A stretch of 64,000 nucleotides of DNA from Octopus sinensis (lineage: Eukaryota), in NCBI RefSeq assembly GCF_006345805.1, contig NC_043002.1:112778001-112842000 (forward strand). Direction: 5' to 3'. The notes under the pieces were generated by a model. It searched no databases and was not told the DNA's origin. It worked only from the letters and a program-made list of their open reading frames with translations. Position numbers and translations under genes: made by a program. Shown here one piece after another: positions 31,199-48,814 of the stretch (its first letter is position 1; every line of letters begins with the position of its first letter).

Positions 31199-31566
31199 AA
31201 AGTAGAAGACACTCGTTGAAGGTGCTACGCACTGAATCTGAACCCAGAACCATATAGTTGGGAACCAAATTTCTTACCAAGCACACACGCACACACACAC
31301 ACTCACACACACTCACGCACATACCCACACATAAACATGTATGTGTTTGTGTGTGTATATATATGTTTCTTTATTACCCACAAGGGGCTAAACATAGAGG
31401 GGACAAACAAGGACAGACAAAGGGATTAAGTCGATTACATTGACCCCAGTGTGTAACTGGTACTTAATTTTATCGACCCCTAAAGGATGAAAGGCAAAGT
31501 CGACCTCAGAACGTAACGGCAGACGAAATACGGCTAAGCATTTCGCCCGGTGTGCTAACGGTTCTG
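31199..31566 (-). repeat. Second copy of the 29497-29851 block
   Basis: See 29497-29851. Confidence 0.85.
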
Positions 31567-31674
31567 TGTATATATATATATATATATATATATTATATAT
31601 ATTATATATATATATATATATATATATATATATATATATATATATATATATATATATATATATATATATATATA

Positions 31675-32100
31675 CGCAGGAGTGGATGTGTGGTAAGTAG
31701 CTTGCTTACCAACCACATGGTTCCGGGTTCAGTCCCACTACATGGCACCTTGGGCAAGTGTCTTCTACTATTGGCTCGGGCCGACCAAAGCCTTGTGAGT
31801 GGATTTGGTAGACGGAAACTGAAAGAAGTCCGTCGTATATATATATATATATATATATATATATATATATATATATATGTATGTGTGTGTGTGTCTGCGT
31901 TTGTCCCCTCCCAACATCGCTTGACATCCGATGCTGGTGTGTTTATGTCCCCGTTACTTAGCGGTTCGGCAAAGAGACCGATAGAATAAGTACTGGGCTT
32001 ACAAAAGAATAAGACCCGGGGTTGAGTTGCTCGATTAAAGGCGGTGCTCCAGCATGGCCGCAGTCAAATGACTGAAACAAGTAAAAGAGTAAAGGAGAGA
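31675..32100 (+). mobile_element. SINE family 1
   Basis: Full copy. Confidence 0.9.
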
Positions 32101-32116
32101 TTAAACAAACTCAAGT

Positions 32117-45133: not shown

Positions 45134-46809
45134 GATTTTATTATTACCCACAAGGGGCGAACATAGAGGGGACAATACAATCGGGGAACTTAAAATAAGA
45201 AAGCGAATGACAAGAAAAGGAAAAAATAAAAGTAAAAAATGACATATGAAAGAATATTTACAATGAGATGTAAATGCCCACTCGATCCCCGGAATCGAGA
45301 GGTTACATTTTCGTCACATATATTTCACAATATTTTCTTTTTTCTCTTCTTTCTTCTCTCTCTTCTCACAATTCTATACGTATTCCATAATAGCTTTCAA
45401 TTCTCTAAAGTCAATCACTGAGCCTCAGGCAGCCGCTCTCTCACTCGAACACTCGTGTAAAATATTACACTCTCTCCGGCAGCTCTGAGGAACTCAGCGA
45501 CTCTTTCTTCGGGGATTAGAGCAGTCTCCTGCCACTGATCGGTCATCCTGTTGACCCATATATGTCCCTCCGTATTACATGTCAAGTCTTTCATTTCAGG
45601 GCAGAAATGGAAGGTTATTAACTTGTAGAAGCAGTAATCTTGTTTCCGTCCTACGTTTTCCCTCGTTTTTCTTTTCGGGCTTATTTCTTCCTTGTTCTCC
45701 TCTCTTTGTTTCTCTCTTTCTCTCTTTTTGCCTTCTTTTCTTTCTCCTTCCTTCTCTTGTCTTTTTGGTTCTTTGTCTGTTCTCTCTTTCTCTCGTGTTT
45801 TATGTTCCTTTTCTTTTTCTTTTTGTGTGCCGTCTTTTCTTTTCGTTTGATTCTGATCTCTCTCTTGTTTTTTTCCTGTTGTTTCTTTTTCCTTTTTTTT
45901 TTCCTGACTCTGTTTTGGTTCTATTTCTTTCTTTTCTTTTATTTCTTTTTCCTTCATTGACTTATTATTTCCTTTCTCTTGTTGTTTTGTTTCCTTTTCT
46001 ATGTTTTCTTTTTCATTTACCGTATTCTTCTTTTCTTCAAGTTCCTGCTCGCACTCCGCTACGAATTCGTATAACGGGCACTCTTTTTTAATGTGCCCCC
46101 TTGTCCCGCACAAGTAGCAGTTTGGCTTTCTTCCCTCTACAATTACACTGAGGGTTTTCTCATCTTCAATTTCTATTCTGTAGGGGAACCTTTCAATGTC
46201 CTCTTTTGTGGCCATCAAACACAGTTCTACCCCATATCCTCTCCAGTTTACCGCGTTGGACTCCTTAAAGGATTCCACCTCCACTTCCTCTTCTGCTGCT
46301 CCTAGAATAGCTGTTGCCAGCCATTCTGTTTTCACTTCTGGGGGTATATTCGGGATTTTAACCCGGACCCCTCTTCTTCCCTTGTATGAGGGCCACATTA
46401 TAAATGTTTCCGCTCTTAGTACAGTGGTAGCCAGTGAGGCTGCAATTTCTTCCGTTGCACATCTCACCTCCACCGTACCAAATTTCTTGCCTCTACTCAC
46501 GTAGGTCGATTTCCCCATTATGTCTCCCAGACATTTTTCGATTTCGGCTATCTCCACTCTTGCCAGTTTCTTCGTATTTTTGTCTTGGGTTCTATATGTC
46601 ACTGTCTTGTTTTCTTTGTCCTCTTTTGCTTTCTCGGGGGGGATTAGCTTCACGCTATCACCCTCCCTTTTGAAGAGCTTTTCATATTCCTTGATTTTAC
46701 TCTTCTCAAAGAAATCATCCTTCACGATTATCGACGAATCATTATTTTTCTTTCCCGTGACCCCCGCATAAGTCGCCATGACTAGAGGGTCAATTCACCT
46801 TCTTCGGAA
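45134..46809 (-). mobile_element. ORF1-only non-autonomous retroelement, unit A (5' UTR truncated)
   Basis: Single ORF1-like ORF, ~280-nt 3' UTR with no ORF2 trace, 3' tail shared with the LINE. Confidence 0.9.
45415..46779 (-). CDS. ORF1-like protein, 454 aa
   Basis: Knuckle CYLCGTRGHIKKEC; aligns with copy a ORF1 (EYEK.FK.EG, EKCL, RG.KF.T.EV, PSY.GRR, NWRG); a 1-bp deletion near the end shortens it relative to unit B. Confidence 0.85.
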   Translation of the reverse strand: MATYAGVTGKKNNDSSIIVKDDFFEKSKIKEYEKLFKREGDSVKLIPPEKAKEDKENKTVTYRTQDKNTKKLARVEIAEIEKCLGDIMGKSTYVSRGKKFGTVEVRCATEEIAASLATTVLRAETFIMWPSYKGRRGVRVKIPNIPPEVKTEWLATAILGAAEEEVEVESFKESNAVNWRGYGVELCLMATKEDIERFPYRIEIEDEKTLSVIVEGRKPNCYLCGTRGHIKKECPLYEFVAECEQELEEKKNTVNEKENIEKETKQQEKGNNKSMKEKEIKEKKEIEPKQSQEKKKEKETTGKKQERDQNQTKRKDGTQKEKEKEHKTREKERTDKEPKRQEKEGERKEGKKREREKQREENKEEISPKRKTRENVGRKQDYCFYKLITFHFCPEMKDLTCNTEGHIWVNRMTDQWQETALIPEERVAEFLRAAGESVIFYTSVRVRERLPEAQ

Positions 46810-46812
46810 CGT

Positions 46813-48574
46813 GATTTTATTACTACCCACAAGGGGCGAACATAGAGGGGACAATACAATCGGGGAACTTAAAATAAGAAAGCGAAATGACAAGAAAAGG
46901 AAAAAATAAAAGTAAAAAATGACATATGAAAGAATATTTACAATGAGATGTAAATGCCCACTCGATCCCCGGAATCGAGAGGTTACATTTTCGTCACATA
47001 TATTTCACAATATTTTCTTTTTTCTCTTCTTTCTTCTCTCTCTTCTCACAATTCTATACGTATTCCATAATAGCTTTCAATTCTCTAAAGTCAATCACTG
47101 AGCCCTCAGGCAGCCGCTCTTTCACTCGAACACCCGTGTAAAAAATTACACTCTCTCCGGCAGCTCTGAGGAACTCAGCGACTCTTTCTTCGGGGATTAG
47201 AGCAGTCTCCTGCCACTGGTCGGTCATCCTGTTGACCCATATATGTCCCTCCGTATTACATGTCAATTCTTTCATTTCAGGGCAGAAATGGAAGGTTATT
47301 AACTTGTAGTAATCTTGTTTCCGTCCTACGTTTTCCCTCGTTTTTCTTTTCGGGCTTATTTCTTCCTTGTTCTCCTCTCTTTGTTTCTCTCTTTCTCTCT
47401 TTTTGCCTTCTTTTCTTTCTCCTTCCTTCTCTTGTCTTTTTGGTTCTTTGTCTGTTCTCTCTTTCTCTCGTGTTTTATGTTCCTTTTCTTTTTCTTTTTG
47501 TGTGCCGTCTTTTCTTTTCGTTTGGTTCTGATCTCTCTCTTGTTTTTTTCCTGTTGTTTCTTTTTCCTTTTTCTTTTCCTGACTCTGTTTTGGTTCTATT
47601 TCTTTCTTTTCTTTTATTTCTTTTTCCTTCGTTGACTTATTATTTCCTTTCTCTTGTTGTTTTGTCTCCTTTTCTATGTTTTCTTTTTCATTTACCGTAT
47701 TCTTCCTTTCTTCAAGTTCCTGCTCGTACTCCACTACGAATTCGTATAACGGGCACTCTTTTTTAATGTGCCCCCTTGTCCCGCACAAGTAGCAGTTTGG
47801 CTTTCTTCCCTCTACAATTACACTGAGGGTTTTCTCATCTTCAATTTCTATTCTGTAGGGGAACCTTTCAATGTCCTCTCTTGTGGCCATCAAACACAGT
47901 TCTACCCCATATCCTCTCCAGTTTATCGCGTTGGACTCCTTAAAGGATTCCACCTCCACTTCCTCTTCTGCTGCTCCTAGAATAGCTGTTGCCAGCCATT
48001 CTGTTTTCACTTCTGGGGGTATATTCGGGATTTTAACCCGGACCCCTCTTCTTCCCTTGTATGAGGGCCACATTATAAATGTTTCCGCTCTTAGTACAGT
48101 GGTAGCCAGTGAGGCTGCAATTTCTTCCGTTGCACATCTCACCTCCACCGTACCAAATTTCTTGCCTCTACTTACGTAGGTCGATTTCCCCATTATGTCT
48201 CCCAGACATTTTTCGATTTCTGCTATCTCCACTCTTGCCAGTTTCTTTGTATTTTTGTCTTGGGTTCTATATGTTACAGTCTTGTTTTCTTTGTCCTCTT
48301 TTGCTTTCGCGGGAGGGATTAGCTTCACGCTATCACCCTCCCTTTTGAATAGTTTTTCATATTCTTTGAGTTTACTCTTCTCAAAGAAAACATCCTTCAC
48401 GATTATCGAGTAATCATTATTTTTCTTTCCCGTGACCCCCGCGTAAGTCGCCATGACTAGAGGGTCAATTCACCTTCTTCGGAAGGTTTCCACACGTGGA
48501 GGCAAATGCCTCGCGCGATATTAATCACTTTACACAACAAAATTTCACTGTCTAGTCACAGATAACAACACACG
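46813..48574 (-). mobile_element. ORF1-only non-autonomous retroelement, unit B (apparently full length)
   Basis: Highly similar to unit A, with a ~120-nt 5' UTR; the A+B pair is flanked by a 13-bp TSD TGGGTATCGATGA (45121-45133, 48575-48587). Confidence 0.9.
47054..48454 (-). CDS. ORF1-like protein, 466 aa, intact
   Basis: As unit A; ATG-initiated and uninterrupted. Confidence 0.9.
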   Translation of the reverse strand: MATYAGVTGKKNNDYSIIVKDVFFEKSKLKEYEKLFKREGDSVKLIPPAKAKEDKENKTVTYRTQDKNTKKLARVEIAEIEKCLGDIMGKSTYVSRGKKFGTVEVRCATEEIAASLATTVLRAETFIMWPSYKGRRGVRVKIPNIPPEVKTEWLATAILGAAEEEVEVESFKESNAINWRGYGVELCLMATREDIERFPYRIEIEDEKTLSVIVEGRKPNCYLCGTRGHIKKECPLYEFVVEYEQELEERKNTVNEKENIEKETKQQEKGNNKSTKEKEIKEKKEIEPKQSQEKKKEKETTGKKQERDQNQTKRKDGTQKEKEKEHKTREKERTDKEPKRQEKEGERKEGKKREREKQREENKEEISPKRKTRENVGRKQDYYKLITFHFCPEMKELTCNTEGHIWVNRMTDQWQETALIPEERVAEFLRAAGESVIFYTGVRVKERLPEGSVIDFRELKAIMEYV

Positions 48575-48814
48575 TGGGTATCGATGAATAAGTGTCACAT
48601 TTCTTTATTACCCACTAGGGGCGACATAGAGAATACATACAATCACGAATGATGAAGAAAATAATTATGAACATTTGGGGTCGGTTAAAAATCGGAAATA
48701 AATAATAAATCGAATGGTTACACAATAGACACAATTAACAAAATTACAAGATGCAGTGGGGCGGGTTCGCGACCCCATGCTCCCCGCCACGACACTTAGC
48801 CTTCCTTTTTCTTC

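Follow-up and report, generated by a model that had tools for sequence, protein, structure and literature searches.

Retrotransposons of the L1 type are the textbook case of relaxed template choice, which is based on poly(A). A stringent type is defined by 3' tails that a long interspersed nuclear element (LINE) and a short interspersed nuclear element (SINE) have in common and by the stem-loops in those 3' ends (Ohshima and Okada; reviewed in PMC3747384, PMC4176376). Stringent pairs have also been described within the L1 clade, namely LINE1-1_ZM with ZmSINE2/3 in maize, the SINEs of sorghum and L1-1_CR of Chlamydomonas (Ohshima 2012, PMC3472496), and from these few plant and algal cases stringent recognition was proposed to be the ancestral state of L1 (PMC3472496). 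Here we describe a window of 64,000 nt of the Octopus sinensis genome (assembly GCF_006345805.1, contig NC_043002.1, positions 112,778,001 to 112,842,000 of the forward strand) in which a LINE of the L1 superfamily, an element holding only open reading frame (ORF) 1, hereafter O, and an abundant SINE all finish in one 3' tail. From the anatomy of these copies we think it probable that the ORF2 protein of the LINE recognises this tail as a 3' box of ~46 nt and that the ORF1-only element and the SINE are copied by it in trans.

The octopus tail is like those of the eel pair UnaL2/UnaSINE1 and of zebrafish ZfL2 in that only the terminal 40-60 nt are common to the partners, with a short stem-loop (in octopus a putative one), no poly(A) and a precise 3' end. 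Pairs of that type belong to L2, CR1, RTE or similar groups and often have short tandem-repeat ends, whereas the octopus LINE is of the L1 superfamily and has a unique A-rich AATAAA end, and the octopus side of the comparison is one of sequence anatomy. The maize, sorghum and Chlamydomonas cases combine an enzyme of the L1 clade with a 3' end conserved over ~45-50 nt, a hairpin with compensatory changes and SINEs that share the end. The octopus tail resembles them in its L1-type enzyme, its conserved 3' end and its SINE, and possibly in a hairpin with compensatory changes; it differs from them in its host, a cephalopod, and in the presence of a protein-coding non-autonomous tier. In that tier O is comparable to the HAL1 or 'half-L1' elements of mammals (Bao and Jurka 2010, Gene 465:9), which reportedly have ORF1 only and obtain ORF2 from trans. 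Like HAL1, O keeps ORF1 only, would depend on ORF2 in trans and has a selected ORF, as proposed for HAL1; unlike HAL1, which uses poly(A) and is of recognisable L1 origin, O shares with the LINE only 35-40% ORF1 identity and the 46-nt tail, has a different C-terminal region and is found in long arrays. The first-pass annotation of this DNA had spoken of a "notable three-tier system", and the three tiers are present, but the arrangement is less unprecedented than that wording implies, given the stringent L1-clade pairs and HAL1.

All tail sequences are written in element orientation, and copies in the window lie on the minus strand unless stated. When the 64-kb window was searched for the tail core GCCCCTTGTGGGTAATAA, allowing up to 3 mismatches, 13 matches were found where 0.04 were expected, and none of the 100 shuffles that served as background reached 13. 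Every one of the 13 was terminal, at the 3' end of a LINE, ORF1-only or SINE copy, with no match in any other context. Four belonged to LINE copies a-d (core matches at 39679, 48605, 52922 and 57233, with a CTAGT loop in all four), two to the ORF1-only copies O1 and O2 (45141 and 46820) and seven to SINEs (17169, 20370, 27386, 28912, 29093, 29670 and 31371). The three tail sequences quoted in the first-pass annotation were found on the minus strand where it had placed them, and the copies that it cited are real, although it had overlooked three of the LINE copies (a, c and d) and, of the two ORF1-only copies, the second.

Comparisons by blastn showed how little else these elements share. The SINE matched the LINE only over SINE positions 185-230 (82.6% identity) and matched O over these same positions only (87-89%), and when O was compared with LINE DNA only the last 48 nt aligned (83%). 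Across eight element types, including those from Octopus vulgaris described below, mean identity was 83% over the last 46 nt and 59% over the preceding 100 nt; shuffled 46-mers gave 51 ± 6%, and the upstream value is thus near background. DNA-level similarity among the LINE, the ORF1-only element and the SINE is confined to the tail.

Three parts make up the tail box, namely the segment GATTGTATTGTCCCCTCTATGTT, then a G+C hairpin of 4 bp whose loop is either CUUGU or CUAGU, and finally an A-rich end that reads AAUAAAGAAAU or AAUAAUAAAAYC; the box of the LINE family in the window, which we call LINE-1, is told from that of the SINE by its CTAGT loop and by GTATGTATTCTC. None of the 13 tail-bearing copies in the window had a poly(A) end. 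These copies, and likewise those of O, of its diverged relative O' and of a second LINE subfamily, LINE-2, terminated at AAAGAAAT, AATAAAATC or AATAAAACA and were followed directly by a target-site duplication, the LINE 3' end ...GGGTAATAAAGAAA(T) being the same end as that of the SINE (AAAGAAAT[A]); the exception to these clean ends was one element, X (L086 1232), that carries an A-run. The absence of poly(A) from a tail shared by all three classes, as first reported for this DNA, therefore holds both in the window and in the O. vulgaris loci. An AATAAA polyadenylation signal lies within the tail, directly after the hairpin (e.g. 39673-39685, 45134-45146). As this signal is inside the box, RNA 3' ends are expected downstream of the box, yet the insertions bear neither flank nor poly(A); with transcripts of RNA polymerase II expected to run past the box and with exact insertion ends, we infer that reverse transcription must begin internally.

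In the mechanism that we propose, the ORF2 protein, with its apurinic-type endonuclease, reverse transcriptase (RT) and C-terminal zinc module, would bind the 46-nt box and not poly(A), and target-primed reverse transcription from the nicked target would begin exactly at the A-rich end of the box, which would leave insertions without poly(A) or transduced flank and with target-site duplications of 10-26 bp. O (~1.78 kb, with its own 5' untranslated region (UTR) and a selected ORF1-like gene encoding a probable RNA-binding domain and a CCHC knuckle) would be copied in trans, as would the 230-nt SINE that carries the same box. Several LINE subfamilies exist, that of the window with the CUAGU loop and that of O. 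vulgaris with the tail type of the SINE and the ORF1-only element. The anatomy points to stringent recognition because the insertions end precisely and without poly(A), the duplication sizes overlap, conservation is local and a SINE trimer, described below, is present.

The candidate enzyme is that of a LINE present in four copies on the minus strand. Copy a (39673-45122; tail box 39673-39718) is full length at 5.45 kb, with an intact ORF1 (43294-44916, 540 aa, one CCHC knuckle) and an ORF2 that is cut short (40342-43284, 980 aa). Copy b (48599-52897; tail box 48599-48644) is 5'-truncated within ORF1 and has an intact ORF2 (48815-52207, 1130 aa) with endonuclease, RT and zf-RVT domains (Pfam Exo_endo_phos 4.7e-14, RVT_1 3.2e-31, zf-RVT 6.9e-10). 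Copies c (52916-57208) and d (57227-61520) share the 5' truncation point of b and have broken ORF2 genes; b, c and d are 4.3-kb units, 99.7% (b versus c) and 99.5% (c versus d) identical, and a is 95% identical to b. The best solved relative of the ORF2 protein of b was human L1 ORF2p (E 9e-70, residues 2-863), compared with E 7e-23 and about 1e-22 for R2 proteins, matched in the RT only; this comparison is coarse, with few LINE clades in the PDB. The few named database relatives of ORF2 were labelled Tx1-like or were Zepp. The domain set and the match to human L1 ORF2p support placing the ORF2 protein in the L1 superfamily, a level at which L1 and Tx1 are not separated, so that the "Tx1/L1-clade enzyme" of the first-pass annotation stands as an L1-superfamily enzyme without a choice between the two. 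The closest database relative of ORF2 (L001, 58% identical) lies on a contig that ends 113 nt past the stop codon, short of the 3' end. A database search with the LINE-1 ORF1 gave no match, and the LINE-1-type (CTAGT) copies examined are those of the window.

The ORF1-only element is represented in the window by two minus-strand copies, O1 (45134-46812; tail box 45134-45180; ORF 45415-46779, 454 aa), which lacks 103 nt at its 5' end in comparison with O2, and O2 (46813-48576; tail box 46813-46859; ORF 47054-48454, 466 aa, with a CCHC knuckle), which is full length. The two are 97.7% identical and abut directly, without a target-site copy at their junction. The unit of ~1.78 kb has its own 5' and 3' UTRs and a single ORF of 454-467 aa, with no ORF2. 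At the protein level the O ORF and the LINE ORF1 were 35% identical over 268 aa, with one CCHC knuckle in each; the ORF1 proteins of LINE-1 and LINE-2 were 34-40% identical to that of O, and no LINE was seen with an O-type ORF1. Besides this ORF1 homology, what O and the LINEs have in common is limited to the tail and a short motif in the 5' UTR. Because the protein identity is only 35%, O is on this comparison an ORF1 homologue of a separate lineage and not a recent deletion derivative of the LINE in the window.

Selection on the O ORF was analysed in 17 O units from the window and from the O. vulgaris loci L084 and L085. The ratio of non-synonymous to synonymous substitution rates (dN/dS) was ~0.2 for the whole ORF and 0.11 for its N-terminal 240 codons; variants present in at least two copies comprised 39 synonymous and 26 non-synonymous changes, and private variants 12 and 14. 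Purifying selection acts on the O ORF, as is usual for transposable elements in which the source copies depend on the protein. At their 5' ends, O and LINE-1 begin with a CACGTG E-box-like motif (O2 48500-48576; LINE a 45040-45122), the 5' UTRs of O, O' and LINE-2 have in common a TCGCGCGA(A/G)G palindrome (also at L085 12870-13020 and L087 11217-11350), and in the LINE 5' UTRs a CCCC...GGGG hairpin adjoins this palindrome. These shared 5' UTR motifs may constitute a common promoter module.

Relatives of the O protein with 94-96% identity are annotated in O. vulgaris, from which five loci were fetched (L084, L085, L086, L087 and L092). Eight tandem O units were found in L084, and eight full units and the 3' end of another in L085; the diverged O' family is present as two units in L087 and one in L086, and in L092 a single O unit is accompanied by a chimeric O/O' unit. 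The array is followed in L084, L085, L087 and L092 by LINE-2, whose ORF2 is 70-86% identical to that of b and whose ORF1 is 41-49% identical to that of a. Its tail, GATTGTATTGTCCCCTCTATGTTC-GCCC-CTTGT-GGGT-AATAATAAGACA, is of the O/SINE type and 89% identical to the SINE tail. The three tiers on one tail are thus borne out anatomically in both species; the earlier observation that the SINE tail is nearer to the ORF1-only element than to the LINE applies within the window, but the LINE-2 of O. vulgaris has that very tail type. Since the tail type of this subfamily is exactly that found on the SINE and the ORF1-only element, a LINE-2-type subfamily or a relative of it is more likely than the CUAGU LINEs of the window to have been the recent driver of both. 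The 99.5% identity between the upstream O units of L084 and L085 was considered as a sign of independent recent insertions and this was rejected, the loci being recent segmental duplicates. Directly after the LINE-2 tail and target copy, L085 (18112-18420) and L092 (18897-19190) hold a ~330-nt older ORF1-like fragment (..EKCLG..), so that these arrays sit inside older relatives from their own family.

The SINE is 230 nt long, with at least seven copies in 17 kb of the window. Tail-A copies on the minus strand lie at 17163-17389 (97% identical to the reference copy, with a 15-bp target-site duplication GGTAATTGTGCAGGC), 20364-20594 (full length, within low-complexity DNA), 27380-27608 (the inverted duplicate of a copy at 28707-28935), 29665-29851 (with an internal deletion, and a flank in common with the 31366 copy) and 31366-31566, the copy cited in the first-pass annotation. 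A plus-strand copy with a second tail type, tail B, lies at 15418-16033, split by another insert at ~15474-15884 and with a 20-bp duplication, ATTATTAGTCAATTAGTTAA, on either side (15398-15417 and 16034-16053). Three units form a plus-strand trimer at 28707-29283, of which the first is a full tail-A unit (28707-28935) and the other two, with tail A (28937-29116) and tail B (29118-29283), both run from position 48, with one 13-bp duplication CAATGTCAGAATC around the whole (28693-28705 and 29284-29296). The junctions fall at the exact tail ends and the tail-B unit is joined to two tail-A units. The trimer is best read as end-to-end template jumping, with two jumps in one integration event, and fits an RT that re-initiates at tails A and B, which would link both tails to one enzyme. 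The head of the SINE contains a B-box-like motif GAGTTCAAATTCC, read directly, by which the element is a putative product of RNA polymerase III. Inverted segmental duplicates (27350-27660 versus 28660-28940) carry the same SINE insertion and flank, and direct ones (29640-29860 versus 31340-31570) the same SINE and a downstream microsatellite flank.

Tail B is seen in the window at 29232-29283 and 15960-16033 as CCCCCTCCCCAAAAATTTT-GGGC-CTTGT-GCCT-AAAGTAGAAAAGATTAG. LINEs in ERZ21867824, from another organism, whose ORF2 is ~40% identical to that of the octopus LINE (L003, L088-L090), end in CCCCTCCCCAAAAACTTCA-AGGC-CTTGT-GCCT, a second hairpin and then AGAAATAAAGCAG (located at L003 8090-8166 and L088 660-737). 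By this resemblance, tail B has a homologue in the genuine 3' tail of a LINE from the same clade; in the octopus DNA examined (the window and the O. vulgaris loci), none of the LINEs bore tail B.

Each LINE tail in the window is followed by GTGACACTTATTCATCGA (18-22 nt, with TACC in addition after a and b), and this string recurs at 61521-61538 with no LINE preceding it. As it also stands upstream of the first unit, d, it represents the target-site duplication, and the element ends first proposed for this DNA were accordingly right, the 18-22 nt after the LINE tails lying outside the element. The target-site copies, termed T, are all on the minus strand: GTGACACTTATTCATCGATACC at 39651-39672 (downstream of a) and 48577-48598 (between b and O2), 18-nt copies at 52898-52915 (c), 57209-57226 (d) and 61521-61538 (upstream of the array), and a partial copy T' (TCATCGATACC, the last 11 nt of T) at 45123-45133, between O1 and a. 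The reconstructed empty site of the window reads ...CCTCTTGAAA ATGTGACACTTATTCATCGATACC ACTTGGATAC..., with no SINE inside. In L087 the order is ...GAGCTAAC / ATTCCAGTCTT / O' / ATTGCAGTCTT / O' / ATTCCAGTCTGTTATA / LINE / ATTCCAGTCTGTTATA / TATTTTGAG..., in which the 16-nt ATTCCAGTCTGTTATA follows both the O' tail and the LINE tail, and L085 and L092 hold the same site unoccupied (...GGATTAAC AATTCCAGTCTGT(A/T)ATA TATTTTGAG...), a paralogous empty site without a SINE. Duplication lengths, whose comparison had been suggested earlier, overlap across the tiers, with 16-26 bp for the LINE, about 11 bp for O and 13, 15 and 20 bp for the SINE. The target sequences differ, being ATGTGACACTTATTCATCGATACC in the window, ATTCCAGTCTGTTATA in L087 and ACATGGAGGAAA in L085, with three further sites for the SINE, and a single fixed target of the Tx1 kind was rejected on these grounds.

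The six long elements of the window stand head to tail on the minus strand between 39.6 and 61.5 kb, in the order L-T-d-T-c-T-b-T-O2-O1-T'-a-T-R. Arrays in one orientation, with target copies between the units and a full LINE downstream, were found in the window (39651-61538) and in L084 (4288-21143), L085 (1-18110), L087 (7330-16235) and L092 (10285-18900), and the unrelated ERZ21867824 organism has a LINE-T-LINE-T layout in which T is ACTAGAAGGT (L088 34-7183). Copy a has the 22-nt T downstream and only the 11-nt T' upstream; this agrees with O having entered a T copy on the upstream side of an a already in place, and it excludes a as the latest insertion. For the same reason, the landing of new units downstream of a resident tail was rejected, and so was template jumping as the source of all junctions, as it cannot account for those that hold a target copy. 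The L087 pattern, the differing 5' ends at O/O junctions, units that are 4.5% apart and the ERZ21867824 layout make the arrays look like the product of successive insertions into a single nick immediately upstream of an element already present, a LINE being the founder. Identical units such as b, c and d are probably added by unequal crossing-over, and template jumping fits the junctions that lack T, which are O2/O1, O'/SINE in L086 and those of the SINE trimer. That integration is not random, a resident copy itself guiding further target-primed insertions back to the nick just upstream of it and so building [ORF1-only]n followed by a LINE as the founding downstream member, is a tentative suggestion that we would not press. 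If it were true, the ERZ21867824 layout would make resident-guided integration a trait of a whole L1/Tx1-like clade with the CUUGU hairpin tail, and a mode unlike either the sequence-specific or the random insertion of LINEs.

Two described systems bear on these arrays. The Tx1-group LINEs (Tx1L, Keno, Kibi and others) have defined repeat or gene targets (Kojima and Fujiwara 2004, cited in PMC3747384). The octopus elements are like them in belonging to the L1 superfamily, in apparent repeated insertion at one position and in ordered tandem arrangement, and unlike them in that the elements of octopus and ERZ21867824 occupy four different targets, so that the preference would be for an occupied site and not for a sequence. 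Tandem SINE arrays of bivalves have the architectures TSD1-(SINE-TSD1)n and TSD1-(SINE)n-TSD1, where TSD denotes a target-site duplication (PMC11481361). Both are present in octopus, the one as duplication-separated units and the other as the SINE trimer within a single duplication, but the octopus arrays mix LINE, ORF1-only element and SINE with a full LINE downstream, and the SINE partners reported for bivalves are only CR1, CR1-Zenon, L2 and Nimb (PMC11481361), not L1/Tx1.

The hairpin within the box has a stem of 4 bp (G.U, C-G, C-G, C-G) and a loop of 5 nt. Compared with tail A, tail B and the ERZ21867824 LINE tail have two stem pairs flipped from C-G to G-C with the CTTGT loop kept, and in an alignment of 12 sequences 95.8% of cells were paired, compared with 15-52% when the 3' partner was slid. 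Several observations weigh against the reading that an ORF2 protein recognises such a box in RNAs copied in trans. Folding returned the hairpin in the tails of LINE-1 and of the SINE, but the minimum-energy fold of the O and LINE-2 tails differed; hairpin energies were no better than those of shuffles (z -0.03 to -1.5; tail A -0.03 to -1.1), which makes folding energy uninformative either way; the changes on both sides of the stem, at two of the four pairs, amount to a single A-versus-B event; and 80 distant relatives (25-35% ORF2 identity, metagenome loci) showed no enrichment of CTTGT hairpins, with 12 forward versus 20 reverse. The 3' hairpins of a further locus, L091, were unrelated to the CTTGT type. 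No LINE copy in the window has intact ORF1 and ORF2 together, and b-d are without most of ORF1; only three SINE insertions have clean duplications (15, 13 and 20 bp); the SINE head and tails gave no match in ARAGORN or in Rfam (gathering and E-value thresholds), the head being without a tRNA; the O. vulgaris loci are partly dependent, with L084 and L085 recent duplicates (LINE-2 99.1% identical) and L092 an older paralogue (92%); and trans-mobilisation is, as usual in the field, deduced from common tails. Since the covariation is effectively one A-versus-B event, the hairpin as the recognised feature is plausible but not established: of the stem-loop proposed earlier, the kept loop and the two flipped pairs speak for it, and the single event and the shuffle-like energies against.

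The RT might instead read the box, or only the A-rich end of it, as linear sequence that pairs with the nicked target, with the 4-bp hairpin incidental, and we take this seriously although we do not favour it. Beyond the shuffle-like energies and the alternative folds that win in O and LINE-2, it can draw on tail A itself, in which stem and loop are invariant save one loop base, so that there is no covariation within it, and on short matches between tail end and upstream flank at junctions (GAAAT versus GAAAAT, AAC-A versus AAC-A); yet tail B and the ERZ21867824 LINE have diverged in most of the flanking sequence while the loop was kept and pairing restored at the two flipped positions. A different role for the box altogether, as a conserved module for polyadenylation or termination, stability or export that was spread by recombination or conversion, with the SINE driven by another LINE such as RTE, strikes us as improbable. 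The AATAAA within the box, the adjacency of O and LINE in arrays, which favours conversion, and the report of RTE and Dong as the active octopus LINEs (PMC9115989) would suit such a role, but neighbouring LINE-1 and O tails stay distinct (CTAGT versus CTTGT; AAAGAAAT versus AATAAAATC) with no homogenisation, dispersed SINEs have the box at their exact 3' end with duplications in the LINE size range, and exact ends without poly(A) are predicted by a priming site and not by a poly(A) signal alone. We give almost no credence to an origin of the LINE tails as remnants of SINE copies that had served as LINE insertion sites, with other LINE copies lacking them, which the first-pass annotation had raised; the empty sites and the tailed LINEs elsewhere exclude it for the copies examined. 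The duplication after the LINE tail also precedes the array, with no SINE on either side, and the paralogous empty site of L085 and L092 has none. The SINEs are dense in the window (at least seven copies in 17 kb) and one O' adjoins a SINE directly at L086 12263, but the box is found on LINE-1 a and b, on LINE-2 (L085, L087 and L092), on O, O' and X, continuous with their own distinct 3' UTRs, never more than 46 of the 230 SINE nt are present, and the box of LINE-1 is set apart by diagnostic differences (CTAGT and GTATGTATTCTC).

For the arrays, an origin solely by unequal crossing-over between duplications or by segmental duplication, without repeated insertion, appears unlikely. Unrelated units (LINE, O and O') are mixed with the same target copy between them, O/O junctions in L085 have different 5' ends, and units of one array are up to 4.5% apart with dN/dS of 0.2-0.35, from which the differences would have arisen in active lineages and not in place; the 22-nt T downstream of a, against 11 nt upstream, also fits later insertion into a T copy. 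What such an origin does explain well is the single 5' truncation point and 99.5-99.7% identity of b, c and d and the recent duplication of L084 and L085, and the TSD-(SINE-TSD)n arrays of bivalves have been ascribed to unequal recombination (PMC11481361).

A common tail is the signature of parasites that borrow one reverse transcriptase, and it is rarely reported for animal L1-type elements. L1-Tx1 LINEs are widespread in molluscs (PMC10294476). In the literature searched, the candidate active LINEs reported for octopus are only RTE and Dong (PMC9115989), and no report was found of the octopus pairing or of an animal stringent pair of L1/Tx1 type, and searches of the literature with SINE or tail sequence strings gave no match; the families may be catalogued in Repbase or Dfam. 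An animal lineage of the L1 superfamily with a conserved 3' box would independently support stringent recognition as ancestral, and would supply a partner for a SINE family among those that predominate in octopus genomes. It would also offer a compact system for separating cis preference, ORF1 function and tail recognition experimentally. Array building, if it is real reuse of a site, bears on how LINEs choose targets and on the origin of tandem repeats derived from transposable elements.

Other features were noted around the array. On the minus strand at 39536-39635, an ATG ~15 nt past the array target site opens a 33-codon frame that ends at a GT donor-like MECLTAFCWILPRDRNPEEGGLNFEYFVQQTAA, and the array may be located in the 5' end of a host gene. 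A stretch of ~460 bp at 38990-39450 with inverted repeats TTGGGTTGTCCGGAAAGTTC ... GAACTTTCCGGACAACCCAA has, by eye only, the look of a mariner-type miniature inverted-repeat transposable element. Long arrays of 8/12-nt periodic repeats with strong GC skew occupy 3605-4900 and 22027-23500, and 62300-64000 on the plus strand holds the coding remnant of another retroelement, with an RT-like ORF, which is unrelated to the array.

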